A DNA stretch of 64,000 nucleotides from Octopus sinensis (lineage: Eukaryota), in assembly GCF_006345805.1 (NCBI RefSeq), contig NW_021832231.1:682001-746000 (forward strand), in the 5' to 3' direction. Position numbers and translations under genes: made by a program. Each line of letters begins with the position of its first letter. Position 1 is the stretch's first letter. The notes beneath the pieces are model-generated. The model made no database searches. It saw nothing but the letters and a program-made list of their open reading frames with translations, and had not been told where the DNA came from. Below, one piece after another: positions 4,789 to 62,977 of the stretch.

Positions 4789-7700
4789 TGAGAATAATCA
4801 CAAATAATAATCACAAATAATTTAATTTGAGAATAATCCATTTGTTTGCACGTTGTTGCACGTTGTTGTTGTTGTTCATTTCTTTCTTTTCATTTGTTCA
4901 TTTCTTATTCTATAATCCATTTTTGTAATTGTCATCTATCTAATAATCTCTCTCTTTCCATTTCTCTTTGTCATCCATTTTTTCATTGTTTCTATCTTGC
5001 TCTCTTTCTATGTCTTTCTGTTTCCAACCCACTTCTGTTCTATGCTCTACTTGCGAAGTTAGTAACAACCGCAAGAAAGGGAGAGTCTGTTCTAGTTGCG
5101 ACAGATTCTTCCACCTTTCTTGCGTGCGTCTTTCCAGGCGCGTTTCTGCCTCTCTCTTAATTTGGGACTGTCCTTCCTGCCGCTCTTGCCAGCGGTTCAG
5201 TGTTCCAGCCCGCAAGAACTCCCCGAAAAACCGCCATTCGCAACATCCCCGTCTGCCGAGGAAGTTCTCAAATCTATCAAGCTCTTCCGTCGTCTCCGGA
5301 AAATCCCATCCAGAATCCCAAAAACTGCGCGTATCTTTGCAGCCTCCTCCCTGTCCGCCGCAATCGATAAGGCTTTGCATCTGATGGCCATTCCGATTGG
5401 CTTAAGCTGTTTTGCTTCGCCTCTTTTGGTCTCGGTTTTGCCCCATTAAGAGCCCGTGTGAAAACCTCCTCCATTTCGCTGGCTACAACCGTCAAACAAG
5501 AATTGGCCTTGTACGATAAGAACTCTTTTTCCATCCGCTGGCTGCGGGACCACCTCGCTAGCTCCGAATTTCCCTCTGGTTCACCATCCCATAATGTGTC
5601 CTCTCACGCGAATGACGTCGACTACCTCAACAGAAAGATTAATAGTAAACTCTTGGACGGCGACGTTCGTGGTGCAGTTAGGCTGGTTGCCTCGACAAGT
5701 CCCCTTTTGCCCACGACCCTGCTGTTTTGAATTCCCTCAGGGAAAAACATCCCCCTCAGCCAAACGACTTCAGGCCTCAGCCGCCCTGACACCCTCGCTC
5801 TCAATCCTTTTGCTGTCTCGGAAACTCTTGTACTGAAAGCCCTGAGGGACTTTTCACCTGGAAGCAGTGGTGGTGTAGATGGTCTGAGACCAGGTCATCT
5901 GAAAGACCTGACGTCTCCCACTACCGCCGACGAGCTGGTCGAAAACTCCTACGCTCAATTACCAACCTGTGCAACCGCTTCATCTCCGGTTCCCTCCCGA
6001 TTTTGCTCGTGATATTTTCTTTTCCGCCAACCTTACTGCCCTTGGGAAAAAGGACAACGGCGTGAGACCCATTGCCGTTGGGAATATCTTTCGGAGGCTC
6101 TCTGCCAAACTTCTGTGCCACGCAATTGTCCCCTTTTTGTCTCAAGTGTTTCTCCCCGCCCAACTCGGGGTCGGTGTCCCAAACGGCTGCGAAGCGGCCG
6201 TTCATTCTCTCCGTGAACTCATCGAATCTTCCCAGTCGGCTATCATGGTCAAACTAGACGTCTCAAACGCTTTCAACTCCATCAGACGTGACCACCTGCT
6301 GGAGTGCTGTCGCGAACTGGTTCCGTTCGCTTATCCCCTTGTACATCTCTCATACGCTTTCCGAGTATCCTCATGTTCGACGATGTTCCCATCTCTTCGG
6401 CCACCGGGGTCCAGCAGGGAGATCCCCTGGGTCCTGTCCTTTTTGCCTTGGGCGTTAACAGTATCGCTCACTCTGTTCGATCCCCAGTTAACATATGGTA
6501 TCTGGATGACGCAACCATTTGCGGTCCCCCCGACGCTGTTTTCGACGACCTTCGTTCTATCCTCCCTTCCCTCTCGGACATCGGCCTATCTATAAACGCC
6601 AATAAATCCGAAATCGTGAACATTGCCTTAAATCCGAGTGACTTCACTGCTTCAATTTCCACGTACCGAGGCATTCTCTCAGACGTCCGGATTACGGACA
6701 AATCAAATCTTACGATTCCCCATGGGGCCTTCTGCCCTCGAATGCTCACTCTCTGGAAAAATTTCCCACTTATCCAAAATGATCGACAAGCTTAAAGTCA
6801 TCGAACCTCATGTGGCTTTTTTCCTCCTCCGAAACACTTCTCCGTCCGTAAAATCCTTTACACCCTAAGATGTGCACCCTGCTTTCAAAGAGGCGACCTT
6901 CTTTCCGACCTTGACAATATCCTCAGGCTCGGTACGAGCTCTCTTTGCAATCTGGCTTTCGACGATCCAGGCTGGATTCAGGCATCCCTGCCTGTGCGCT
7001 GGGGTGGCCTTGGCTTGAGATCCTATTCCGATCTTGCCCTCCCGGCATTCCTATCCGCTCATCACGCTTCTCGTACTCTCTCAGACATCGTTCTTAGAAA
7101 CCTCCCCGAACGGAAATTGTCTGAAGTTTACTCTGCAGCCCGTGGTCGGTGGGAGGCTCGGTTTGGTTCGAAGCTGCCCAACTCTCAATCTGTACAGCGC
7201 CAATGGGACGAAATCTCTTGTCAGGCAATCTTCGAAGGCCTGCTTCCTGTCCCCAATCAACACCGTGTCGCTTGCCTCCGTGCAGGTCGCTGTGAAAGCA
7301 GCGGTGTCTGGTTAAAGGCTCTCCCTCTCCCTTCCATCGGGAACCTGTTGGACAAGGAATGCCTAAGAATTGCAATCTCCCTCCGTGTCGGGCTGAAAAT
7401 CTGCCAGTCGCACAAATGCCGTTGTGGGGGAACTGTTGACGAGTACGGTTTGCATCCCCTCGCTTGCCGGCGGAGTGCCGGTCGTGCCCCCCGTCACAGT
7501 GAACTCAACTCAGTCGTACAGAGAGCCCTCGCCTCAGCAGGCATCCCGTCTATCCTTGAACCTGTTGGATTGGATAGAGGGGATGGCAAACGCCCTGACG
7601 GCATGTCCACCTTCCCTACGAGCAGGGGAAATCCCTTATTTGGGATTCTACCTGCTCGGACACGTTCTCGCTGGGAAATCTCGCGCTGTCCGCCGCCAAT

Positions 7701-8025
7701 CCTGGGCACGCTCCAGGCAGGCCGAGGAGCGAAAGATTCTCAAGTACGGCCACCTGCCCAACTCGCTGCTCTTTACTCCAATTGCCTTGGAGTCCTCCGG
7801 GATCTTCGGTCCCAAGACACTCCGCTTCCTTCGCTCGCTCGGTCGACGGATTTCAAGGACTAGTCACGATCCAAGAGAGTTTTCTTGGCTCCTGGAACGT
7901 CTGTCGATTGCTGTGATCCGAGGGAACGTCTTCGCCATTCGCGCGGCGGCTGGTCGGGTGTCGTGAGGCCTTTAACTAACTTAGCTATCTGTATTTTTGT
8001 CTTGTTTGTATAAATTAAATTTCCA
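4789..8025 (+). mobile_element. CRE-clade RLE non-LTR retrotransposon, copy 2, near full length (PHD-RT-CCHC-RLE), frameshifted
   Basis: PHD at 5043-5180; RT motifs KLDVSNAFNS, GVQQGDPLGP, WYLDD, RWGGLGL; C-terminal CRCG...HPLAC...RHSELN; RLE KRPDG...PIALESSG...LLERLSIAVIRGN; stop at 7964-7966. Possible 14-bp TSD TTTATTAA(T/C)AAATT at 4775-4788 and 8026-8039 with one mismatch. Confidence 0.9.
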
Positions 8026-13881: not shown

Positions 13882-15392
13882 CAGTACCGCTCAAATGTTT
13901 CGGACCACCCTATTTTTCTCAATTTCCAAGTCAATCCTAAATTATTTTTATACGGTTCTTTAGAGAAACTTATTAGATAAGCTTAAATACATTTATTCTA
14001 TTCTAAAATTTCTTTAAATATTTTTGTTTGGCGCCAATTGAATATAATTGATTTTTGACTCGATCATATGTTCCGGACCAGTTGCAATCATATGTTTCGA
14101 ACCAGTTAAATCTCTTTAATTTAAATAATTTTTGATTCAATAAAAACAAAAGACTAATAAATAACAAATGCCGCGTGTTTCACTGGTTGATCGGGTCGCT
14201 ATCATCACTTTTTTTAAAGATGGAGCTTCACAAAGAGAAATTGCCGAAAAATTAAAAATATCCAAAACTGCTGTTCAAAGAACAATTTCCAGATATTCAT
14301 CCGTTGGACTATATTCCGACAGACCCAAATCTGGTCGACCGAGATTGTTATCCCCAAGATCTGAACGCAAATTAGTGAGAATTTCGAAAGCAGACCCCAC
14401 AAAAACGGCAAATCAAATTAAATTTGATATGAAATTAAATTCTATTGTAAGCACAAATACAATTAAAAGATGCCTACAAAGAAATAATTTGAATGGGCGA
14501 AAGCAATGCCCAAAACCAAGTCTTTCCATATGCCATAAAAAGGCTAGAAAAAATTGGTGCATTGAGAAATTAACTTGGAGCCAAAATGATTGGGGTAAAA
14601 TTATTTTTAGTGATGAATGCAAAATAAATTTGCATTCAAACACAAAAAATTATGTTAGAAGGCCACCAAACTCTAGATTTGACTCAAAATATTGTTTAAA
14701 AACACGAAAATTTTCTCCTAGCATTATGGTCTGGGGAGCTATTGCTGCAAATGGATGGAGAAACATTGTCTTATGCATTAAAAATGTTGATTCCGCAGAG
14801 TATCAGAGAATTATAAATGTTGGACTCGAAAATTTTTATGATGAGACCATGTATCTCCAGCAAGACGGCGCTCCTTCCCATCGGTCCATGTCGACAATGA
14901 ATTTTTTCAAAGGTAAAAATCTTAGAAACTTGGCCGAGCCAGTCACCCGAACTGAATATTATTGAAAATATGTGGTCGGTACTAAAACAAAAACTTTATG
15001 ATCTGGAACCAAAAGATCTTCCAGAGCTCTGGAATTTGACCAAAAAAATTTGGTACGAGATTGATAATTCGTACATTGAAAAATTATACAATTCACTTCC
15101 AGAGCGAATAAATGCTGTTATAACGAACAACGGAGGAAATATTAATTATTAACTTTTTATAAGTTTAATAAATTTTCGGTTTTTTTTAAACTGGTCCGGA
15201 ACATATGATCGAGTATAAAATCGATAATTTTAAAATTGCGCCAAACATGAATATCTGTCCAAGTTTTTAAAATAGAATAAATGTGTTTAAGCTTATCTAA
15301 TAAGTTTCTCTAAAGAACCGTATAAAAATAATTTAGGATTGACTTGGAAATTGAGAAAAAATAGGGTGGTCCGAAACATTTGAGCGGTACTG
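13882..15392 (+). mobile_element. Tc1 DNA transposon with ~220-bp IR/DR-type inverted repeats
   Basis: TA TSD at 13880-13881 and 15393-15394; TIR starts CAGTACCGCTCAAATGTTTCGGACCACCC; outer and inner ATGTT(T/C)CGGACCA direct repeats within each IR. Confidence 0.95.
14168..15152 (+). pseudogene. Tc1 DD34E transposase with one frameshift
   Basis: Paired HTH, GRPR, FSDE, VWGAI, QQDGAPSH; then WPSQSPELNIIENMW continues in another frame after about 14930 (consistent with a 5-nt deletion). Confidence 0.9.
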
Positions 15393-20524: not shown

Positions 20525-21900
20525 TAAGTCATATGGACAAGTTATCGATTGAAGAAGGGAGTAAAACATACATTCAGTCGATTTTGCCAAAGATGACGTT
20601 CTAGAGCAGGGGTGCGCCGCATGCGGCCGAGAGTCGATGAATGTGCGGCCGTGGGCACAATTAGGTCATCGAGCAACTAATCTTAAATATAATGCTCATA
20701 GTGTTAATTAATCAAGAAAAACCCTAAATAATAATTAAAAATATTCATATTAAATAAAATTCTATTTTTATATAATGGTTAACCTCATTGCCGAACAAAC
20801 GCTGGAACACGATCTGAAACACGTGGGTAAAACCTTGAAAAAATGCGAGGACTTGGACGAACTGCGATGGCTTGCACAAAACCGCAGAGGATGGAAAACG
20901 ATGGTTAAGAAGATTGTATCGTGTGTGGCACGTGTGGGAATATAACTCTTTCCTTTCCTTGTTTATGTTCCTACGGGAAGTGCTAATAATAATGATAACC
21001 TCATTGATCTCATTGATGCCAAAATAATTAATTATGACGATCTTACACCAAATACATTTAATACTATATTCGATTATATTTTGAAACAATTTGAAGAGCG
21101 ATTTAACGAATTTAAAAAAATTGAACTCAAACTTCAATTAACTGCAGCACCACATACTGTTTCGATTGAGAATGCGCCATTGGAATTTCAAATTGAATTA
21201 TTGAAATTAAAAAATGATTTAATTTTGATAAATAAATTTAATGAAAGCGAAGATTTGTTGAATGTATGGAAATCAGCGACAGATTATTCAAATTTACGTG
21301 AAATGGCAAGAAATATTCTCGTTTTATTCGGAAGCACATATTTATGTGAGTCTACATTTTCCAAAATGAAATATTTAAAAAGTCAATATAGATCTCGGAT
21401 AACGGACGCAAACTTAGAGTCATGTTTGCGCATAATGATATCTACCCTACCAGTGGATTTCAATAAGCTCGCAAAAAATACCAAAGATCCTGGCCGTCAT
21501 TAGAATAACTTGTATAATACATTTCTTTTAATTAATTTTCCTTCTTTCTTATCTTTTTTGCATGAAATAAGTATTTATTTTAATAATATGACGTCCCTGA
21601 TGAACGAGAGCATTTCCTGTCCAAGAACTTATTCGGTCTCGATGACAATGGGGAACTTATGCGGTCACTTTTAATAATTAAAAAAATTACTATATTAATA
21701 TCGAAAAAATAATGCAGAAAATGTGCGGCCGTGGAAGAAAAGGAAAAAAATGCTATGCGGCCGCAAACCCAAAAAGCTTGCGCACCCCTGTTCTAGAGTA
21801 TGATCATTGAACACCGACACGAAGTGAAGGTAGACAACGCCTCTGCCAATAAACTTGCGGAGCTGGCATTCCGCGAGGACACTCAGTTGAACAAAAAAAT
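20525..21900 (+). mobile_element. R4-like RLE retrotransposon 3' fragment (paralogous to 2315-2500), split by a hAT element
   Basis: 20525-20606 and 21791-21900 align to 2315-2500 (CATATGGACAAGTTATC...; GAGCTGGCAT..CGCGAGGACACTCAGTTGAACAA). Confidence 0.8.
20607..21790 (+). mobile_element. Non-autonomous hAT (Buster/SPIN, GTF2IRD2-like) element
   Basis: 11-bp TIR CAGGGGTGCGC; 8-bp TSD TTCTAGAG at 20599-20606 and 21791-21798. ORF 21081..21503 has the hAT dimerisation motif LFGSTYLCESTFSKMKYLKSQYRSR. Confidence 0.93.
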
Positions 21901-22036
21901 TGACTTCGATTTACCAGGTTTCGGTATCATTCGAAGGATCGTACATTTCCATGTCGATAGTTAAATAGGTTATTTTTTTAATCAATAGTTAAATAAATTA
22001 TTTTTAAAACTGAGAAGTTAAACGTTTCACATCGAA

Positions 22037-22990
22037 ATGTCTAGGTGAGCTATTAATTGTTCAATATTTTTAAAAGAATTATCACATATGAAGATATTGT
22101 AATTATGAGTGATTATATCGCCAGCAAAATGATTGTCAAGCCAAAAATTGGAATAGTCTGTGGAACTGGTCTCGGAGATATAAACAGCATGATTACTAAC
22201 CCTCTTATTATAAAATTCGAAAATATCCCAAAACTACCAAGAACCACGGGTAAAGAAAAAAGTTTTAAAATAGTCGATTCCCATGCCGGACAATTCGTTA
22301 TAGGAAACCTGGCTTGTGGCACGCCAGTCATCTGTCAGCAGGGAAGATATCATCTTTACGAAGGCCATGATCAATCCACTGTATTAACAAATTAATAACC
22401 CAGATTGTTGCCCCAATTCGACTTATGAAATTCTTGGGTGTCGAAATTGTCATTTTAACGAATGCTGCGGGCGGGATCAATCAATCTTATTGTTGTGGAG
22501 ATATAATGGTGATAAAGGACCATCTCTACTTTCCCGGTTTGGTTGGAAACAGTCCTCTAATTGGACCGAATGATGCTCGATTTGGGGATAGATTTCCATC
22601 CTTGTATAACTTGTACGACAGGGATCTGAGGAGCAAGTTATTGGACTGTGCTCGGGAGTTGAATTTTGACTTTGTTAGAGAAGGAATTTACGCGTCGGTC
22701 GCCGGACCGCACTTTGAGACGAATTTTGAGATGAGGTTTTTGATGAAAAATGGTTGTGATGCAGTTGGTATTGGTTTGTTATATAAAATGAAGGAATGAG
22801 CACTTCTGGTGAAGCCATTACTGCAGTTCATTGTGGAATGAAAGTTGTGGCCTTGTCTACAATTTCTGATGTGTATAAAGATGATGAGAATTTTCAAAAT
22901 GTCGCGGATGTTAATGATATCACCGCTGTTCTTTCCAATAGTGTCGTTCATGTTAGAAGACTCATCGAGAAATTTGTTAGCAAGATTTAG
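22037..22990 (+). CDS. PNP: Purine nucleoside phosphorylase (trimeric PNP family), spliced
   Basis: TYED, PKIGIVCGTGLG, HAGQFVIG, GRYHLYEG, LTNAAGG, GPNDARFGDRF, REGIY...GPHFET, GCDAVG/MST, HCGMKV; several short introns. Confidence 0.93.
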
Positions 22991-23094
22991 AATCAATCTT
23001 TAATCATTTATTTGGTTTTTGGTATTAATAATTTTTAACGACATCGACTCGTCTTATTTTAAAATAGAATTTTAAAGCTTTGATTTTATCATTT

Positions 23095-23290
23095 CCTGAC
23101 CGAATTAATTTTCCGTTCAAGGGGGGACTCGCTCTCGTTTGGGACGTGACCTGTGTCGACTCGTTTTCCTCGTCATCTCTCATGGATTCTGCCTCCCGCC
23201 CTGGCTCAGCCTCCGCACATGCCGAAACAAAAAAAATAACAAAGTATGCCTCATTGGAGAACACCTGCCTTTTCGTCCCCCAGTTTGCTT
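23095..23290 (+). mobile_element. CRE retrotransposon RLE-domain fragment
   Basis: PD...FPFKGGLALVWDVTCVDSFS...AHAETKKITKY matches the RLE segment of copies 2 and 3. Confidence 0.75.
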
Positions 23291-23691
23291 TAAGGTCCAC
23301 TCTGCTTTTGGTGAGACCCACTTTAAACCTGAAATGGTATAGATCATTTTAATTACAAACGCGTATCTGGTTAAATTCAAGTATATATGGTGGAAGGGCC
23401 ACGTTATCCACAGTGATTTTAATATCCCATTTAATATGTAAGAGCTGAAGGAATGAAAGGTGTAAAAGACTAATATATCAAACCATTTCAAAGCAAAATG
23501 GCATATTTTGATTTCCAATGTGCAGCCTTAGAGCAATAATTTTAAACTTTTCAAGTTTTATTATAACTTTAAAAATATTAGTCCAGATTAAATGTTACTA
23601 CACAAATAAGGCATTCCTGTACAAAATCATAGTACAATAAACTAAAAAATAAAATGAACTCAGTATCTCAAAAAACGATAAGTTTAACAAA

Positions 23692-24074
23692 TTAAGCAGT
23701 TTCTCTTCCAACTAAATTATGTTCTCTGCAGTGCTGAGTGAACGTTTTATTTACTTCCTCGATCTGAGCTTTTAGTTTTTCCAATGTGGCCGTAATTTGG
23801 ACTGTTGTCTTCTGTAGAATAGGAATCACTTCTTCTGCAGTTTTCTCAACTAGTACAGCCCCAATGCGACGAAGACACCTCCTTTTACCATCCACCTGAC
23901 TGAGAGTTTCGATTATATTTCTAATTATGATATACACACCAAAACTCACTCATGCTCACGTTGTTCTATTTCAAGTTCTGCTACGTTAGAGTCCAGTGAT
24001 ATAAGTTGTTGTCTTAAATCATTATATTTCTTAATCGCCGCTTCTTTTGAAGGTGCACTTACATCAGTACTCAT
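23692..24074 (-). CDS. PFDN2: Prefoldin subunit 2, two exons
   Basis: MSTD...KYNDLRQQ...VAELEIEQREHE / IIETLSQVDGKRRCLRRIGAVLVEKTAEEVIPIL; one ~29-nt intron. Confidence 0.88.
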
Positions 24075-24362: not shown

Positions 24363-25828
24363 CAGTGGGGCAAATAAGTCATGGCACACCTATCATTTTT
24401 TTAATTCAATATATTTTTACAATGATAACTTTTTCGATTTAGTTCATCATGCTACACAATAAAATCTTGCATTCTTTTGAACCCATTTCGTGCTAATTAT
24501 ATTCATGAATTTCAAATAAATATAATTGTTTTTGCTTCATATTTAGAAAAACGTCAAATTTGATGTGTAAAAAAGTGATGACACTATCAAAAAATATGGA
24601 TTTTTTTGACAATAAGATACAAATGATTATCTTTTGGTGCCTTGTTAAGTTATGGAGAGATTTCTAAATTGTTGATATTACCAAAAAGTACTGTTCGAAA
24701 TATTATTACTCGATGGAAGCAACGCGGAACTGTTATTAATAAACCAAGATCGGGTGCTCCAAAAAAGATATCTCTGCGTTCTTCTTCATTAATGAAAAGA
24801 TTAGTTACTTCAAACCCAAAAATAACTCGAAAAGAATTGGCCGATAATTTAAAAATCACAGGAACGTCAGTGTCCCTTCGTACAATCACTTCTATACTAC
24901 GCAAAGAAGGTATCAATAAGCGAAGGCCCCGTCGAGTTCCGTTATTACAGAAAATACACCTTTCAGCGCGAATCCAATATGCAAAAAATCTTTTGAACAA
25001 AGAAAATGAATTCATAAACAATATTTTGTGGTCGGACGAATCAAAAATACAACTTTTCGGACTGAACTATACGCTTTCAATTTGGCGCAAATCAAATCAG
25101 GCGTATATCCCAAAATGCACCATACCTACCGTAAAGCATGGGGGAGGTAGTATCATGTTGTGGGGTTGTTTTTCATCAACAGGTGTTGGTGAACTATTTG
25201 TAATTGATGGAATGATGAATTCTCTTAAATATTGCGAAATTTTGGAAAAATGTCTTTTACCTTCGGTCACGAACTTAAATTTGACACAACATTGGACATT
25301 CCAGCATGACAACGATCCTAAGCACAAGTCAAAAGTAACCGTTAAATGGTTAGAAAAAAACAAAATAAATGTTTTGGAATGGCCAAGTCAATCGCCAGAC
25401 CTGAATCCCATCAAAAACTTATGGAAAATATTAAAAATAAAAGTTGGCTTAAGAAAACCAACAAATATCCAGGAATTAAAAACAATTTGCTACGAAGAAT
25501 GGAAAAATATTTCTAAAGTAGAATGTCAAAAACTAATTTTTTCTTACAAAAAACGATTGGAAGCAGTTCTGCTAGCAAAAGGGAATCCAAATAAATATTA
25601 ATTGGATTTCGTGCCATTACTTTTTTCCCTCAAAAAATTGACTTTTAAAAATAAATCGTTAATTAGTGCACTATTAATAATTCCCTTTAAGATAGTTTTT
25701 TTAATAATTTATCTAAAAAGTTCTATATTACTAATTTATTTTTTAAAGTAATGTATTTAATCATTTTTTGCAAAGAATTGTTAAATTTAGTCAAAATTTG
25801 CAAAGGTGCCATGACTTTTGCCTTACTG
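24363..25828 (+). mobile_element. Tc1 DNA transposon
   Basis: TA TSD at 24361-24362 and 25829-25830; imperfect TIRs CAGTGGGGCAAATAAGTCATGGCAC and CAGTAAGGCAAAAGTCATGGCAC. Confidence 0.92.
24642..25601 (+). CDS. Tc1 transposase, open frame but third catalytic E changed to K and no ATG at the start
   Basis: WSDESK, TVKHGGGSIMLWGCF, FQHDNDPKH, WPSQSPDLNPIKNLW; AAA at 25413-25415 in place of GAA. Confidence 0.88.
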   Translation: MLSYGEISKLLILPKSTVRNIITRWKQRGTVINKPRSGAPKKISLRSSSLMKRLVTSNPKITRKELADNLKITGTSVSLRTITSILRKEGINKRRPRRVPLLQKIHLSARIQYAKNLLNKENEFINNILWSDESKIQLFGLNYTLSIWRKSNQAYIPKCTIPTVKHGGGSIMLWGCFSSTGVGELFVIDGMMNSLKYCEILEKCLLPSVTNLNLTQHWTFQHDNDPKHKSKVTVKWLEKNKINVLEWPSQSPDLNPIKNLWKILKIKVGLRKPTNIQELKTICYEEWKNISKVECQKLIFSYKKRLEAVLLAKGNPNKY

Positions 25829-27801: not shown

Positions 27802-28466
27802 ATGTCTGATTCTCCCGGTGAGTATGAAGTCGAAAAAATCATCAACATGAAAGTTAGAAAAGGAAAAAAATTCTTTCTAGTAAAATGGCTCAACTACAGC
27901 GAGTATTCCATCATTTTCCCACTTTTTAGTACTGAAAATACGTGGGAACCCGAAGAAAATATCAGCTGCGGGATTCTCGTAGAACGGTTCATGGCTCTCA
28001 GAAATGAGTCCAACTCCAAGAAAATAAAATCCAAAACACCAAAGAATGCTCTAAAAGACCCAAAACCTGACAAAACAACCCCAAATTCTTCTTCTGTGTT
28101 CGATTTCGTTCCTTCCCCGGGAGAAGACCTTAACAAATCTGCAAAAAAATCCACAAAAAATGGAATACAAAAAAAGTCAAAAAAAGTCAACTCCTCATCA
28201 AAAAAAGTATAAATTTAAGACCGAATTACGCGAGTAGTCTTCAGTGGTCACACTCATTCCACACGTGAACAGGGAAACCGTGGAGAGGGTGGTGGGTGCC
28301 ACTAACGAGGGGGGAGCATTGCAGTATCTTGTTATATTGTACTCATTCTTGTGAGTGTGCTAGTAAGGGACGAGATACCTGCACGCTTGTGTCCTCGGCT
28401 GTTGCCAGAGATAAATTTTCTGAGAAGGTTGCCGAGTTTTTGGAGTCTTTTCTGGAATTTTCTTAA
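27802..28466 (+). CDS. HP1: Heterochromatin protein 1 (chromo plus chromoshadow), spliced
   Basis: Chromodomain EYEVEKII...FLVKW...NTWEPEENI with a 27-nt intron. Chromoshadow VERVVGATNEGGALQYLVIFK...LVSSAVARDKFSEKVAEFLE is recovered after removing a 25-nt intron near 28340. Confidence 0.88.
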
Positions 28467-35047: not shown

Positions 35048-37947
35048 ATGCAATATCCATTTTTTGACACTAAAAAACGAGAGGAGAACAGTGGAAGGAA
35101 TACTCCAGGCCCAAAGGATGTAAGAGACATTAAACAAAGCTTTAATCGTCATTTGCACAACTCTCGCCTCAAGGACCGCAATATTGCTACCAAACGTGAT
35201 TATTACATCTCTTTGGCTCACACGGTGTGCGACAAAATGGCTTCCCGGTGGATCAGAACGAGCCAATACCACCACAGACTAGACTCCAAGGTTTTCCTTG
35301 ATTTTATTTTCCCAGAGAATTTATTATTTGTCCATTGAATTCTACGTCGGTCGTCTTTTGATAAATTCCATGATCAACGTTGGAATAGACGGGCATTGCG
35401 AAGAAGCCGTTTATCAAGTATGTCCAACATGTTCTTATTTAACAAGCTGGGACTAGATTTGGAAGAATTAGAAAACATGGAGCCTGAAATTGGTTTAGGA
35501 AATGGTGGACTGGGAAGACTGGCTGCCTGTTATCTTGACTCGATGGCTACTTTGGGCATTGCAGGCATGGGTTATGGACTGCGCTATGAGTATGGCGTAT
35601 TTACTCAAGTAATTTACGATACCGACCATGTCTAAATTTTATTTAAATTAATTAAGAGAGAGGAGCTTGACAATTGGTTGAAGTATAGCAATCCCTGGGA
35701 GAGGTGCATCCAGGAATATATTGTTCCTGTCAATTTTTACGGGAAAACAATCAGAGTGGATGGACAAACACAGTGGATTGACACTGAAGTGACCTTTCTT
35801 TAATAAGTAGGTTGTGTATGCAATTCCCTACGACACACCTGTCCCCGGATATGGGAATAACCACGTCATAACTATGCGTTTGTGGGCTGCCAAACCCTCA
35901 GCCGTATTATTTCTGGATTGCTGTAAGTTATTAGTTTTCGTCACTGTCTAGTCCACTCAGGAAATTACGGCAAAGCTATGAGAGACCCATACCTTGCTGA
36001 AAGCATAACACGTGTTCTCTACCCAAATGACGAGGTATTCATGCCCTTTATTTCAAGAGATTTGAAGGTAAGGAACTCCGTCTCAAACAAGAGTACTTCC
36101 TGGCCTCAGCGACTCTCCAGGATATTATTCGGCGGTACAAGGACTCGAAAGAACCTAGGACTTCATTCGACCAGTTTCCAGAAAAGGCAATTGGTCATTA
36201 TAAATTAGTAGGTGGCCATTCAAATGAACGATACGAGTCCATCCTTGGCTGTTCCTGAATTGATGAGACTGTTGGTGGACGTCGAAGGTCTGGATTGGTC
36301 TTATTCTTGGGATATCTGCATAAGAACTTTCGGATATACCAACCACACTCTCCTTCCCGAGGCACTCGAGCGATGGCCACTAAAAATGTTGACTAAATTG
36401 TTGCCCAGAATAATGCAGATAATCCATAAAATAAATCGCAAGCATTTACAGGTTGAATGTGCAGTGATTTTGCAAGGCGGTCTCTGAGTTTTGGCCCAAT
36501 GACGAGGATGTCTTGGAGAGAATGAGTCTGATTGAAGAGGATCGTAATAAACGTGTCAACATGGCCTATCTTTGCATTGTGGGGTCACATTCCGTCAACG
36601 GAGTCGCCGAACTTCACTCAAAATTAGTAAAAACTGACGTGTATATATATTTTGTATAAATCACAAGATTTCCTGATTTTTATAAAATGACTCCTGCCAA
36701 GTTTCAAAACAAAACCAACGGAATCACTCCCAGGAGATGGCTAGTCTACTGCAATCCATCTTTGACAGATTTTATTCGCCGTGTACGTTTAAAGTATTAC
36801 TTTTAGCAAATTGGGGACGGATTCGTAACAGATTTGCGTGAGTTGAACAAACTGAGGCCACTTGTGTCAAATCAACAAATTATTGACGAGATTTGTTTGA
36901 TAAAACAGGTTCAGTGTCCTCAGTATGTCATAGAGTAATAAAAATAAATTCGCTTTGTATGTTAAAAAGTTGTTTGGATTCTTGATTGACCCCTCGACCA
37001 TGTTTGATGTGCATATCAAACCAATTCAAGAAAGTAAACGACACCTTCTGACCTGCCTTCATATAATAACGCTCTACAACCGCCTCAAACGGGTCAAGGC
37101 TGGTTTGGATGACTACACTGTCGTCCCCAGGACTGTCATAATTGGGGGGAAGGCTCCTCCCGGCTACAGAATTGCAAAACTCATCATCAAATTGATATGC
37201 AATGTGGCTGATGTGGTGAACAGTGATCCGGAGACCAATAAAGACCTGAGGGTGTTTGTCCTTCCGGATTATAAAATGTCGTTTGCAGAGAAAATGGTCC
37301 CTGCAGCTGATTTGAGTGAACAACTCTCACTCGCAGGAACTGAAGCGTCTGGAACTGGAAACATGAAATTTATGGTTGGTCAGTTGATTTATTGCCAGTT
37401 GAACGGGGCTGTCACTCTGGGGACGTTTGATGGGCCCAATGTAGAAATGGTTGAACAGGTTGGGATGGAAAATATATTTATATTCGGAATGACAAACCAC
37501 GAAGTTAAGGAAAATTACTCTTCTGGGTATTTTATAAGTAAAGAAGTGTAGATACAATCCTCGTTTTTATTATCCAAGGAGTCCTCAATTAATAGAATGT
37601 ATTGAACAAATAAGAGACGGATTTTTCAGCAGGGAGGAGCCTAATTTATTATGCGAAATATGTCAGACTATGCTCTCTGATGATCCTTTCATGGTCATGA
37701 GTGACTATGATGATTATATTCAGAAGCAGCTTTTGGTAGAGGCTGCTTACTTGGTATGTTGTGTGCCGTATTTTGATAGAATTCTAATGTGTGGAATACA
37801 ATGTGCTTGAACAACATCATTGCTGCTGGGTTCTTCTCTAGTGACCGTGCTGTGGCTCAGTATGCTTCCGATATTTGGAACGTTCCCTTGTCCAGGGATA
37901 TACTGCCTGTCTTAGATGAATCTCAAGAATTCTCTGGTTTGAATTAG
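35048..37947 (+). CDS. PYG: Glycogen phosphorylase, multi-exon, with divergent active-site motifs
   Basis: [93 protein letters not shown] (PLP Lys), GFFSSDR. Confidence 0.95.
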
Positions 37948-50936: not shown

Positions 50937-53175
50937 TTAAGTCGATATCTGAGTCGTTTTAATCTCTCCGAGTACACGACTTGCCTTCCCAAGAGCCTAA
51001 GATGACACAAAACAATAAACCTCGATCATTCTCACTGCTTCGTGTCGCTTATCTTTGATAGCATCACTCTCTGAGAGCAGTTCGTCAATCTCGGCAGTGA
51101 CGTAGAGCTTATTAATCAGTTCGCTGTGGAGGTTCTCCACTGTGTGGTTCACAAGGAAGTTCATTATTGCCTTGGGGACACTATCCTGGATGTTATTCCG
51201 CACAATCTTGTAGTATGAAGTAATCAGTCTTTCTACAAATCACCAAAGAATAACAACCGATTAATATACAGTCACTTTTCTCCCGAGGGGATAGCTTGAG
51301 GGAATCAAACCGTTTCTACCAATGGAAAAACCAGCTTACATTCTCACTCTCCTCACTCTCCCGATTCAATTCTGTATTACTCAACATTTCCTGAGTATAT
51401 CCAAATACAACAAACCCGACGTGAGATCAAAGACTCCTGTGACCTCATCATACTGTGGACTTCTCGGAAGTAGGGATGTCGGGTGTTGATGTACGCAAGT
51501 TCAATCTGCACCAAATTTTTAACCATCGAAATGGTGGGACCCAAACAGTCTTCGAGCAAATCATGGACGACTGAGATTATGCACTTGGCAAGGACGGGAA
51601 ACCGAAGTGAGTCGAGCTAAGGCAATAATCCCCCAAGACTACCTCATTTACACACTGAAAGGCAATCCGCTTCATCTCCTCGTGCACTAAATCCACACAC
51701 TGCAAACACGGCTCTTCGAATTTACGAATTTGTCTTTTCACGAGCAATTCGAACGAAAAGTCTGGGACGAAGAGAGCATTCCGAGTGCCCTTCAATACAA
51801 CCAACACTCAAAACCGTCGCATTTCGAATGGAAGTGAGGATCTGTACAGCAGGGAGACCATCGAGGGAGTCAATCGCCTCGAGACAGCGAGCAAATGCAT
51901 CATTGAATATAAAATTTATCCGAGCCCCCCCACACCTACATAAAATAAAAAACCACATACAATTCGTTAATTGTGATGTTCGATGTGTTTCCGTTGATCA
52001 ACGAGCAATAGTCAGTCACAAAACGATTCAAAAACTGCAACAACAATTTCGCCTGAGAAATCAGACTATCACCTCACCTTGTCGTCTATGGCCTGTCCAA
52101 ATGACTTTTGGAGTGCTGTATATTTGGTGATTAAAAAACTTATTTTGTTCCGCAGTTCCGGCAGAGAGTCGTGAATATGCCCTATCAACAACTTTGCCTA
52201 AAATAAACAAATTCCAACTGATTGTAGACGCTTGGAAAGAAACAGCGTGCCATTTCTGGAGGCAATGGACGGGTAGTTCAAATCGAGGAATTCAGTCTCG
52301 TCCGAAAGTGCTTCCTTCATTCCCTAAGTAAATGAGAAGGTTGGACGACCTTGTTGTTGTTCAGATCGGTCTGACTCCGATTTACGACTCCCACAATTCC
52401 CAGTTTGACAGGAATCAACTTCCCGCGCAAAACATCTAAGAGATCGGTCCCTGGGTCGACCAGATCAAGCTTAGTGATGACAGCCAAAGTCCGCAGTCCA
52501 TCGGGATCGACTTCTCGGGCAATCTTCAAAGCGTCCGACGTGGCAAAATCCGCAGTGGCGGCTGAGACAGCGAGAATGATCGACTTTGGGTTTTTTATAT
52601 GTTTTAAATAAAGGTCTCGGACGAGTTCTTCCACGTCGGATGGCTGGTCTCCCACAGGAACCTTAGTCATCCCAGGAAGGTCCACAAGAGTCAGGTCCAC
52701 CACATTGGGGGAATATATTTTTAAATTTATTGGAATATCGCTAATTCCCTAAAAATAAATAATTAAATAACTTTATTTATTCCAGTGACCCGTTCTGTTT
52801 CGGAAACAATTTCTGCCTCAACTTCTTTGAAATTGTAAAACACACGTCGAGGCAAATGCAAAAAAACAGCCCACTCGTCACACAATTCGTCCACTTCATC
52901 AGTGGAAGGGGCAAGTCGCCTTTTACTGTCAGGAGAAATGTGGATAAGCTGAAGAATTAGCGGTCTCCGAGTGACAATTCCGTGACCACGGGGGAGAAAT
53001 CCTCGACCAACTAGACTTTCTAAGACAGAGCTTTTTCCACTGCTCTGAGATAATAAATTTGGATTTAATCAACTTGGGCTCCAATAACCACGATTTGTGG
53101 GAGATTTATGGAATCAGAGCCTGTTAGGGTAAATATGTCGTGTAGTTTATTGATTACTGGTATTAAACCGTCCAT
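50937..53175 (-). CDS. DNM1L: Dynamin-related protein Drp1, multi-exon
   Basis: [118 protein letters not shown] and [12 protein letters not shown]. Confidence 0.93.
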
Positions 53176-53366: not shown

Positions 53367-55632
53367 CAGCGCCAAGCACCCGCCTCGCTGGCGATGTCCC
53401 TGCCTTTTGTGCCCGGACCCCTGAGGAGGTCTCGATCGCCTCTTCATCTGTCCAACAACTTTTGTTTGCTTTGAAATCTTTCAGGGGGAACAGTAGTGGT
53501 GGTGTTGACGGTCTCCGTCCCATTCACTTAATGGACCTCATCTCCAATACTGCTGAGGCTGGAAACCGTCTTTCTCATCCATTGCCAAGCTTTGTAACCT
53601 ATTTCTCCGTGGGGACATATCCGAGCATGCCAGACTGCTCTTCTTCTCTGCGAACCTGTCTGCTTTGGGGAGAAAGACGGCGGCATCAGACCTATTGCCG
53701 TCGGAACGTTTTTCGTCGCTGTTTGCAAAGGTCGGATGCAGCTTGTAATTCCTTCTATTAGCGACCGAACTCCAGCCCATTCAGTTGGGTGTGGGGGTAC
53801 CTGGTGGGTGCGAGCCTCGTCCACGCTGCCCGGTGTTTCATTGAATCGGCTCGTCTCTCAGAGCGGCCCCAGTTATTATTAAAATTGGATGTGAAGAACG
53901 CTTTCAATTCGCTCAATAGAAAGCATCTTCTTGAGGTTTGCAAGGCCAGAATTCCTTCTCTGCTGCCCTTCATTTTTCTTTCTTATGGTAACCCGAGCCT
54001 CTTGGTTGCTGGCGATTCTTTCATTTCGTCTTCCTGTGGCGTACAGCAAGGCGATCCTTTGGGTCCTTTATTATTTGCCCCTCGGTGGACTTTGTCGCCC
54101 GCAGGATTGCGTCCCCTCTTAATATTTGGTATCTGGACGACTGTACTATTGGTGGTCCGCCCGACATTTTGCTAAACGACTTGCAATCTCTACTCCCGGC
54201 GTTGTCATCTATTGGTCTTGAAATCAATTCTCTAAAATCTGAAATCGTTAATCTTAACGTCGAAGACCTCACCTTCGAAGACTTTTTGCTTAGTTTCGTG
54301 GCCTCTTGCCCGATCTGAGGCAGACCTCTTATTCTGAACTTGAAATCCTGGGTGCCCCGATCCACCACCAATCGGTCTCTCGTATTCTCGATTCCAAGAG
54401 AAATGCTCTTGCTTCTCTTTGTGATAACTTGTGGACATCGATCCCCATCCCGCTTTTTTATCCTCAAAACTTTCTTTTGATTCCGAGGATCAATTATGTC
54501 CTAAGGAGTTCCTGTTGCTTTTCTGTTCCCTCTGCTTTGGAGTCTTTTGACGCTCTGGTGCGTTCTTCAGCCGAGATTATTTTTAACGTCAAGTTCGATG
54601 ATGTCGGTGGCGTCAGGCCAAACTTCCTGTTCCTTTTGGTGGGCTTGGGCTCCGCTCGGCTCTCGACATTTCTCTTCCCGCTTTCCTTTCATCGTCTTCA
54701 GGATTGTATCTTCTTGTCCATAAGATTCTTGAAAAATCGCCCGGATCTCGTTTGGACTCTGATATTAATTCTGCACTTTTTCTTTGGAAGGAAAAAGGGC
54801 TTGAGTTCCCTTCTGATAGGTCCCTCCAACGTGAATGGGATAAAATTCTAGTAAGCATCATGCGGACTCGTTGGAGGCTCTCCTGAACCAGCACGACTGG
54901 CTGTTTCACCGTGCCAGCCGCCAACCGCATTCTGCTCTTGGCTTAACTGCCTTCCTTCGACGCATTTGGACACCTGTCTTGACTCCGACGCCCTCCGTTT
55001 TGGCATTTGCCTCCCCTCGGACTTCCGATCTGTAGTCCCCACCCCTGCCGGCGGATCTACTATGGACGTATACGGGCTCCATGCCCTCTCCTGCAAGAAA
55101 AGCGCGGGTCGTATTCCACGCCATTCGGCGATTAACAGAATCATTCTCGACTCCCTCGAAAAGCCGGCTACCCTTCTGTCCTTGAGCCTAAGGGTCTCGA
55201 CCGTTGTGACGGGAAAAGGCCGGACGGCTCTACGTTGTTCTCGTTTTATTCTGGGAGACCTTTGGTCTGGGATTCCACTTGTGTGGATACCTTCTCAAAG
55301 TCTTTCATCAACGAATCGGCCTCTCTTGCTGGGTCTCGTGCTAATAAGGCTGAGCTTTCGAAGTGCCGGAAATATCAGTCTTTGATGGATGACTTTTGGT
55401 TTTGGCCAATCGTTGTCGAGACTTCCGGCGTCTTTGGCTCCGGGACCCTCACTTCCCTAAAGAAATTGGGACATCTTTGTTCTTCGCGGTCCAAGGACCC
55501 TAGGGAATTTACTTTCCTCATTCAGAGGATCCTGCTGGCTGTCATGCGTGGCAACAGCTGTTCCCTCCGTCTCGCTGGGAGAATTTATTAGTTTGTTGAC
55601 TTTACTTAGTAGTTTGACCCTAACAATAAAAC
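53367..55632 (+). mobile_element. CRE-clade retrotransposon, copy 3 (distinct subfamily), 5'-truncated with TSD
   Basis: Perfect 15-bp TSD ACAAGAAAATAAATT at 53352-53366 and 55633-55647. Motifs SSGGVDGLRP, KLDVKNAFNS, GVQQGDPLGP, WYLDD, HALSCKKSAGRIPRH, LVWDSTCVD, PIVVETSG, QRILLAVMRGN; frameshifted. Confidence 0.92.
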
Positions 55633-61500: not shown

Positions 61501-62977
61501 GGTTTTTTGCTTGTTCCTTTCACAATAAGAAACTTGGGAGACTTTGCGAGCACGTGAATGATAGCGAATTAGGCATACTTTTATCAAATATGGACGACCT
61601 TTATAACCTTCATTCTTCGTTTGTGACGTATAGGGGATTAATTCACGTTTCGATAGTGAAATGCGTAATAGACTGTTCTTGGGGTCCTCCGATATTGGGG
61701 ACATTCTCCTTGACATTGTACAACCAGTTTATTGACATCCAGTTTCCTAGATTTTGCATATACAAAAAATACGTGATCGACTCAGCTGCCTGTTCCCGAC
61801 TGCTTAATTCGAGTTTGTTGGACAAAACTTTCTGTCAGCATCTCAAAGTGATTTTTTCCTTAATTTTAGAAAGCTACTAAAATGGATGTCAAACAATTTG
61901 AAATTCTCCTGCTTAAGCCAATCCAGAGATTGTGTCGGTATCCTCTGTGCATTGATGAGGTTGTGGTGTCCCTATACTTTGAGATTGTCAAAATTCTTGG
62001 CAATACTACCAGCTTTACAGAGGCAAGGACGACTATTAATTCGATAAATGTCAAAGTTAACCAAGTTCTTAGCAATTCAAACAATACTTTTAAACTTGAT
62101 TGGCTCGGAAAACGAATCACAGTGCCCAGCCACGTCAAAAGAGAGGAATTTAAAATTACGTCGTTGACTAATTTCATGGGCCCTCGTGTGCTCGTTCACT
62201 ACTCAGTCTTTAAATATAAGCATAACAAAATGATGGCATTTCTCCTTTTTAATGACATGGTCATTCTTGCTACTTTTGCAGGAAAGGCTTCTGACATGTT
62301 TAATGTCAACCATGAGGGACTCCTCACTTTGAAAGTTCCGGTTTTCCACTGTTTCTAATGTTTATTTAAAGGCAGTTCTTCTGCCAAAATTCCGATGTTA
62401 TATTCACAATTTGAATGACTTATTTATCGCTGATTTGTCAGGAAAACAAATTATGCTTCAACCTGTCAATCCTGATGAAGGGTCCTTTCCTTGTGTCTAA
62501 TTTTAGTGTCATATGTGTAGAGAAATACTCTCAAGCATTATCTAACTATATTTCTTTCAGTACCCCACATTGTTCAGTCTCCTCCAATTTAGTCTTAATC
62601 ATTTCACTAAATATAATTCAATTTGTAACTATGCCAGTTTCCAAGGAAGATGGAATGTATCACTGCTCTCTCACTGTTAATGGACTCACTCGTAATGCCA
62701 TTCATGGCTCGTTGGTGGACAAGATTATTGTGTGGGCTGATAGTCCGTTTGAGTTTGTAATTCAGGCAGAAGAGTGTCCCGAAATAGAATTAGTTCTTTC
62801 TCACCCTCGTTCATTTCGTCCAAACCGTTTTAAATGTCCAAATATTTTATAGGCGCCATTGCTCATACCAAAATTAAATGGGACTTGCCACAAAAAGGCT
62901 ACATCCACGATTTTTTAACATTTGAGGGGCATCAAGTTTTTGTAGACTTGGATTTGTCGTTTGGAGAGGTCATTTAA
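58511..62977 (+). CDS. ITSN: Intersectin-like endocytic scaffold, long form (EH-EH-coiled coil-SH3s-DH-PH-C2), multi-exon
   Basis: EH1 LAKIW/DLVD...LNQKQFFYAMKII; EH2 near 59830-60080; coiled coil; SH3s (AKKSF...WWVGRIDQQIGWFPKSFV; YNFVGEEDGDLGF...WSEGE...GIYPNNYV; LARSK...GWFP); DH LLLKPIQRLCRYPL; PH MMAFLLFNDMVIL; C2-like C-terminus. Confidence 0.88.

Follow-up and report, generated by a model that had tools for sequence, protein, structure and literature searches.

A 64,000 nt stretch of the Octopus sinensis assembly (RefSeq GCF_006345805.1, contig NW_021832231.1, positions 682,001 to 746,000; hereafter the window, with all coordinates given relative to its first base) was found to contain a purine nucleoside phosphorylase (PNP) gene in which aspartate occupies the position of Asn243 of human PNP. 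The gene, its residue identities, its family, its position in the PNP tree and the recurrence of Asp243 among homologues were all computed here. Taking the sequence together with the behaviour of analogous engineered enzymes, we consider it reasonably probable that the window encodes an intact PNP of a dicyemid mesozoan, which carries Asp243 and is predicted to act as a broad-specificity enzyme that phosphorolyses adenosine.

The PNP gene comprises five exons and spans positions 22037-22990 on the forward strand (Table 1). The open reading frame (ORF) at 22796-22990, from which the original prediction was made, corresponds to its last exon; that ORF represents one exon only, and the tiny introns and the contaminant nature of the contig had gone unnoticed. 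Once the four GT-AG introns are removed, the coding sequence is 849 nt in length and open, with neither frameshift nor stop, and yields a protein of 282 aa. Splicing of exon 1 to position 22077 produces the N-terminus MSRIITYED, a start comparable to the MSKKIVYED of Dicyema japonicum PNP. The numbering of the window PNP is the same as that of human PNP from residue 184 on, because a one-residue insertion near position 75 is offset by a one-residue deletion near position 183. In the spliced gene, codon 243 is GAT (Asp; 22868-22870), codon 257 is GTT (Val; 22910-22912) and the GPHFET motif retains Glu201, so that all three residues originally called stand in the complete gene. The corresponding NCBI octopus protein model (LOW QUALITY PROTEIN, PNP 1-like) consists of exons 1-4 with the introns read through.

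Comparison with other sequences indicated that this gene does not belong to the octopus. The window corresponds to positions 682001-746000 of VCDQ01002408.1 (GCA_006345805.1; 1,033,805 bp), to which it was 100% identical over the 20,763 bases compared. After the octopus model, the next-best match to the window PNP was D. japonicum PNP (UniProt B9ZYX1) at 64% identity, with all others at 48% or below, and a neighbour-joining tree placed the two as sisters. The PNP introns measure only 23-32 nt, and a similarly short intron interrupts a convergent prefoldin subunit 2-like gene approximately 700 bp downstream. Dicyemids and myxobolid myxozoans are the only animals known to have introns of less than 30 bp (PMC13644364). 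D. japonicum itself inhabits the renal sac of O. sinensis and has a genome of 36.7% GC with 49% repeats and very short introns (PMC6736024), traits that agree with the composition of the window and with the remnants of Tc1/mariner, hAT and reverse-transcriptase sequences that it carries. Because ultra-short introns in both the PNP and the prefoldin-2 genes accompany the sister relationship to D. japonicum PNP, these data indicate that the window is DNA of a dicyemid, an octopus kidney parasite, contaminating the O. sinensis assembly. The original suggestion that the enzyme is that of a parasite is thus borne out, and the parasite can be named as a dicyemid. An octopus origin and horizontal transfer were also considered, and both were rejected in view of the tiny introns in two adjacent genes and the sister relationship to Dicyema. 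It follows that approximately 1 Mb of contig attributed to O. sinensis appears to be dicyemid DNA, the genes of which have been mis-modelled because their introns are only 23-32 nt long.

The window PNP and its D. japonicum homologue are both 282 aa in length and share Thr33, Ser242, the GHDQS insert region and the absence of His257. They differ in that D. japonicum carries Asn243-Lys244 where the window PNP has Asp243-Val244, Gly257 in place of Val257, and Tyr200 in place of Phe200. An identity of 64% suggests either that the source was a different dicyemid species or that the locus is a paralogue of B9ZYX1. As the D. japonicum sequence keeps Asn, the change to Asp would have arisen inside the dicyemids once the two sequences had diverged.

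Family models assigned the window protein to the PNPs. It matched Pfam PF01048 with 155 bits (cutoff 25.1; 2.7e-45) and passed the NCBIfam models PRK08202 (purine-nucleoside phosphorylase; 271.7 against a cutoff of 218) and TIGR01697 (PNPH-PUNA-XAPA, the inosine/guanosine/xanthosine phosphorylase subfamily; 268.6 against 197.1). With TIGR01700 (PNPH), the inosine/guanosine-specific equivalog, it scored 269.3 bits, slightly under the cutoff of 293.35. The MTAP model TIGR01694 failed at 70.6 against a cutoff of 274.85, and the other MTAP and MTIP models were likewise far under cutoff. The top HMMER matches among PDB chains were Schistosoma mansoni PNP isoform 2 (5cxs; 2.7e-67) and human PNP (~1e-66), with MTAP chains matching only at about 1e-8 to 1e-11. 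By these comparisons the protein is a PNP-clade enzyme and not an MTAP, in keeping with the PNP scaffold originally proposed.

The active site was complete outside the positions discussed below. The phosphate-site residues were all present (Thr33, which is Ser33 in human PNP, His64, Arg84, His86, Ala116 and Ser220), with Thr at position 33 also found in 22 of 121 homologues, as were the ribose-site residues Tyr88, Phe159', Phe200 and Met219, together with Ala117, Gly118 and Val217. All 27 columns that were invariant in an alignment of 68 sequences were retained. Support for the fold came by proxy from an AlphaFold2 model of D. japonicum PNP (pLDDT 93.2, pTM 0.92), in which a strand covers 234-244 and a helix starts at 257, and which superposes on human PNP with a TM score of 0.96 and a root-mean-square deviation of 1.3-1.6 Å over 281-283 columns; by extension, the window protein would adopt the PNP fold. 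The sole hint of a homotrimer is that Phe159, a residue that human PNP receives from an adjacent subunit, is kept. Quaternary structure, substrate range and expression of the window PNP are inferred.

Since the prediction depends on a single residue, its placement was examined by several methods. Asp243 fell opposite human Asn243 in HMMER alignments to PNPs in the PDB, in a MAFFT alignment of 119 homologues plus human PNP, and in an alignment of 284 domains to the family hidden Markov model (HMM). The HMMER posterior at residue 243 was only ~0.6, because a gap was opened directly after this residue. Alignment to D. japonicum PNP spanned all 282 residues without a gap, and in the D. japonicum model residue 243 lies in the end of the strand at 234-244 whilst residue 257 is the first of the C-terminal helix. 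Equivalence of Asp243 with human Asn243 therefore appears secure, because the alignment to D. japonicum is gap-free and the D. japonicum model matches human PNP; a structural comparison might have moved the Asp elsewhere, and this proxy left it at the strand end. The second substitution originally called, His257 to Val, was recovered in the ungapped, MAFFT and family-HMM alignments, while in one pairwise HMMER alignment it was displaced by a single residue, so that its placement, although supported by most alignments, is less certain than that of residue 243.

In trimeric PNPs, Asn243 restricts activity to 6-oxopurines, Glu201 binds the purine N1-H and His257 forms a hydrogen bond with the 5'-OH. 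A protonated Asp243 in the window PNP could instead bind an adenine base through two hydrogen bonds, as donor to purine N7 and as acceptor from the 6-amino group, with complete phosphate and ribose sites on a presumably ordinary trimeric-type NP-I/PNP fold. Asp204 of E. coli PNP and Asp220 of MTAP act in the same manner, the latter being the counterpart of PNP Asn243.

Engineered enzymes on the same scaffold, carrying the same residue change, provide the closest experimental parallel. Human N243D, calf N243D and Kluyveromyces lactis N256D all retain Glu201 or its equivalent (PMC6128611, PMC6274182, PMC5074518), and all gained efficient adenosine phosphorolysis at the cost of reduced 6-oxopurine activity (PMC5074518, PMC6274182, PMC6128611). 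In human N243D the adenosine kcat rose ~5000-fold (PMC6128611, citing earlier work), and the calf and human mutants phosphorolyse adenosine besides guanosine and inosine (PMC6274182). The K. lactis mutant reaches a kcat/Km of 2.2e6 M-1 s-1 with adenosine and of 1.6e5 with inosine, where adenosine activity of the wild type was not detectable (PMC5074518). The premise of the original prediction, that N243D opens human PNP to adenosine, thus extends to the calf and K. lactis enzymes (PMC6274182, PMC5074518). These are laboratory mutants with His257, whereas the window protein occurs naturally and its residue 257 is Val. Because the three mutagenesis studies agree and Glu201 is kept, the evidence leans towards a broad-specificity enzyme that prefers, or at least accepts, adenosine, converting it to adenine and ribose-1-phosphate; by the same analogy, inosine and guanosine would probably still be handled at lower efficiency.

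Asp243 proved to be a recurrent state of the family, contrary to the rarity implied by the original prediction. Pooling of the sampled family gave 23 sequences with Asp243 and 227 with Asn243 (about 9% Asp of 250); Asn accounted for 227 of the 260 sequences with a residue in this column, and Asp for 23 of the 33 non-Asn residues. Among the 120 closest 90%-identity clusters there were six further Asp243 proteins, all with Ser or Ala at 201 and with His257, which formed one separate clade. Five of these are from named heterobranch gastropods (Biomphalaria, Lymnaea, Aplysia, Plakobranchus and Bradybaena), with the unnamed sixth nested inside. This gastropod paralogue is the counterpart in nature of human PNP engineered to carry E201Q/N243D. 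In a library of 1.84 billion proteins, searched with the D. japonicum homologue, the best 150 representatives of 50%-identity clusters included Asp in 17 of ~143 domains covering the site. Asp243 was accompanied by Ala201 and His257 in Trichuris suis, T. trichiura and T. muris (representative), and by Asp201 and His257 in the beetle Onthophagus; Glu201 and His257 were present in the beetle Callosobruchus, the fungus Smittium and a member of Bacteroidales, and Glu201 with Ile257 in a member of Thermoguttaceae. Across gastropods, Trichuris, beetles, a fungus and many bacteria, these data suggest that the change from Asn to Asp has occurred many times.

The animal examples resemble the window PNP in being metazoan, trimeric-type and naturally Asp243, but they keep His257 and have mostly replaced Glu201 (Ser/Ala in snails, Ala in Trichuris, Asp in Onthophagus). 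The gastropod clade was separate in the tree, indicating that the animal Asp243 homologues have origins independent of the dicyemid change. We found no paper characterizing the gastropod, Trichuris or beetle Asp243 homologues. Asp also occupies position 243 in at least four solved structures of the PNPH-PUNA-XAPA family (4m1e, 4lna, 8swt and 6tk9). Three of these (4m1e, 4lna and 8swt) share Glu201 with the window PNP, and 4m1e, which is from Planctomyces limnophilus (PMC10900210), and 4lna also lack His257. They differ from the window PNP in their bacterial origin and share no more than about 45% identity with it, and 6tk9 has Ala201. Judging by its 271-aa size and Thermus-like sequence, 6tk9 is probably PNP II of Thermus thermophilus, an enzyme that accepts 6-aminopurines only (PMC11430614), has an activity of 200 U/mg on adenosine and reportedly forms a hexamer of ~30-kDa subunits (PMC8073115). 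Glu201 was lost in 10 of 21 Asp243 proteins as opposed to 1 of 226 Asn243 proteins (Fisher p = 2e-11, with kinship ignored), and the window PNP falls in the Asp243 subclass that retains it. Covariation of residue 244 with Asp243 was also sought in the pooled family alignment, with no convincing pattern. That Asp243 recurs among animal PNPs and is tied to Glu201 loss is arguably the more useful outcome; the window gene itself is a modest addition to a recurrent and known variant, albeit from an unusual organism and a mis-assigned contig.

Several observations weigh against an adenosine-accepting dicyemid enzyme. Two concern the reality of the residue: the sole annotated protein model lacks exon 5 and thus residues 243 and 257, and no second copy of this exon was present in any collection searched. 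A search with the exon-5 peptide returned zero candidates, failing to recover even D. japonicum PNP, with which it has GMSTSGEAI in common, so the index was evidently insensitive for short queries. The exon-4 ORF retrieved distant bacterial fragments only, none of them another dicyemid copy, and when the ORF products of exons 4 and 5 were looked up as exact matches, no additional contig emerged. Within the 64-kb window, tblastn with the PNP likewise revealed neither a further PNP nor an MTAP-like sequence. This lack of an independent exon 5, in a contaminant contig of a long-read assembly where coverage may be low, would suit an assembly or consensus error at the GAT codon, or a pseudogene. 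We regard either as very improbable, given that the 849-nt coding sequence is undisturbed and that four tiny introns all keep GT-AG boundaries. Moreover, consensus errors in long-read assemblies are mostly indels, and Asp243 is no lone single-base oddity, since D. japonicum has other residues at the adjoining positions as well (K244V, F245Y).

The remaining objections concern function. SmPNP2 uses adenosine with Asn retained, indicating that residue 243 is not the sole determinant (PMC6128611), and about half of the natural Asp243 proteins also lack Glu201, the retention of which here may mean that any shift to 6-aminopurines is only partial. Furthermore, the C-terminal 42 residues, which hold both 243 and 257, are possibly under relaxed constraint, as residues 241-282 (22862-22987) are 33% identical between the two dicyemid PNPs, compared with 70% for residues 1-240, and thus evolve much faster than the remainder of the protein. 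This divergence also fits the chief rival explanation, namely that the enzyme still acts mainly on inosine and guanosine, and that Asp243 represents near-neutral or slightly harmful drift in a loose C-terminal segment of a reduced parasite genome. Retention of Glu201, the partner of the 6-oxopurine N1-H, and the substantial inosine activity left in K. lactis N256D (PMC5074518) are in line with this explanation. Against it, all three of the trimeric PNPs cited became active on adenosine once Asn was replaced by Asp, the predominance of Asp among non-Asn residues in many lineages suggests a functional alternative state, and the other catalytic residues of the window PNP are evidently constrained. 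We therefore consider drift with retained 6-oxopurine specificity unlikely, and both sequencing error and phosphorolysis of 5'-methylthioadenosine (MTA) less likely still.

The latter possibility, in which the window PNP substitutes functionally for MTAP, derives from the original view of Asp243 and Val257 as a coupled, MTAP-like design. Human MTAP belongs to the same NP-I trimeric superfamily; it recognizes the base through an Asp and places a hydrophobic residue close to the 5' group. In the window PNP, loss of His257 would remove the hydrogen bond to the 5'-OH and render the pocket more hydrophobic, such that Asp243 together with hydrophobic Val257 and Ile260 might admit MTA for salvage of methionine and adenine. 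MTAP reportedly has Val233 and Val236 where Val257 and Ile260 sit, as described by Appleby and colleagues in 1999. The two substitutions did not prove to be coupled. His257 is also absent in about 15% of Asn243 family members, and because D. japonicum PNP lacks it (Gly257) yet keeps Asn243, the sequences indicate that its loss in dicyemids is older than the change at 243 and independent of it. The window protein resembles human MTAP only at the ~1e-8 level and fails all MTAP models by a wide margin. It keeps Phe159', the cap over the 5' end in PNP, and the second Asp of the MTAP motif, T-D-Y-D, is missing (S-D-V-Y). An MTAP substitute is thus quite improbable.

If the window PNP does accept adenosine, a broader scenario can be envisaged, although we rate it as a long shot. 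One dicyemid lineage would have re-tuned its only PNP to an adenosine, and perhaps MTA, phosphorylase, offsetting loss of ADA and/or MTAP in a genome of ~5,000 genes, and, taken with the Asp243 PNPs known from Trichuris, gastropods and beetles, would point to an unrecognized, repeatedly evolved class of adenosine phosphorylases among the PNPs of animals. Use of MTA and replacement of MTAP or ADA are speculation, and published accounts of the D. japonicum genome, supplements included, offer nothing usable on purine salvage, ADA or MTAP. More generally, trimeric animal-type PNPs are held in textbooks to be specific for 6-oxopurines owing to Asn243, and the Asp243 homologues point to frequent natural switching, so that adenosine phosphorylase activity may be commoner among animal PNPs than assumed. 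This matters for reconstructing purine salvage in reduced parasites, as well as for the assumption that animal-type PNPs do not cleave adenosine-analogue prodrugs.

Table 1. Exons and introns of the PNP gene and other features annotated in the window
Feature	Positions	Strand	Remarks
PNP exon 1	22037..22044	+	ATG TCT AG, encoding Met-Ser and the first two bases of codon 3; GTGAG directly after
PNP intron 1	22045..22076	+	32 nt, GT..AG
PNP exon 2	22077..22249	+	Residues 3-61; CGTGLG phosphate loop with Thr33
PNP intron 2	22250..22273	+	24 nt, GT..AG; translated as GKEKSFKI in the NCBI octopus model
PNP exon 3	22274..22380	+	His64; GRYHLYEG, corresponding to human Arg84, His86 and Tyr88
PNP intron 3	22381..22403	+	23 nt, GT..AG
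PNP exon 4	22404..22767	+	TNAAGG, Phe159 equivalent, GPHFET (Phe200, Glu201), DAV
PNP intron 4	22768..22793	+	26 nt, GT..AG; the NCBI model enters it and terminates there (...GIGLLYKMKE*)
PNP exon 5	22794..22990	+	Gly218-Ile282 and TAG; Met219, Ser220, Asp243, Val257, Ile260
GC-rich block	5969-7966		Up to 54% GC against ~33% around
Tc1/mariner transposase, truncated second copy	14168-14965	+
hAT dimerization-domain fragment	21081-21503		Upstream of PNP
Prefoldin subunit 2-like gene	23692-24074	-	Two exons, 29-nt GT-AG intron
Tc1/mariner transposase ORF	24642-25601	+	Apparently intact, 319 aa; HTH_Tnp_Tc3_2 and DDE_3 domains
Chromodomain (HP1-like) protein exon	27802-28212	+
Glycogen phosphorylase exon	36955-37551	+
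Dynamin exon	52317-52703	-
GC-rich block	53789-55591		Up to 54% GC against ~33% around
RhoGEF/PH (intersectin-like) protein exon	61882-62358	+

Besides PNP and prefoldin-2, the window has exons of further host-type genes (Table 1). Remnants of repeats lie on both sides of the PNP gene, at 20526-21964 and 23080-23352. In addition to the hAT fragment, the upstream flank holds a stretch ~76% identical to positions 2311-2499, whilst the translation of the downstream fragment is 49% identical to that of an ORF at 55235-55591, which adjoins reverse-transcriptase fragments. At least one ORF in the first of the two GC-rich blocks is also a reverse-transcriptase fragment. Both blocks are probably remnants of long interspersed nuclear elements, consistent with the repeat content reported for D. 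japonicum.

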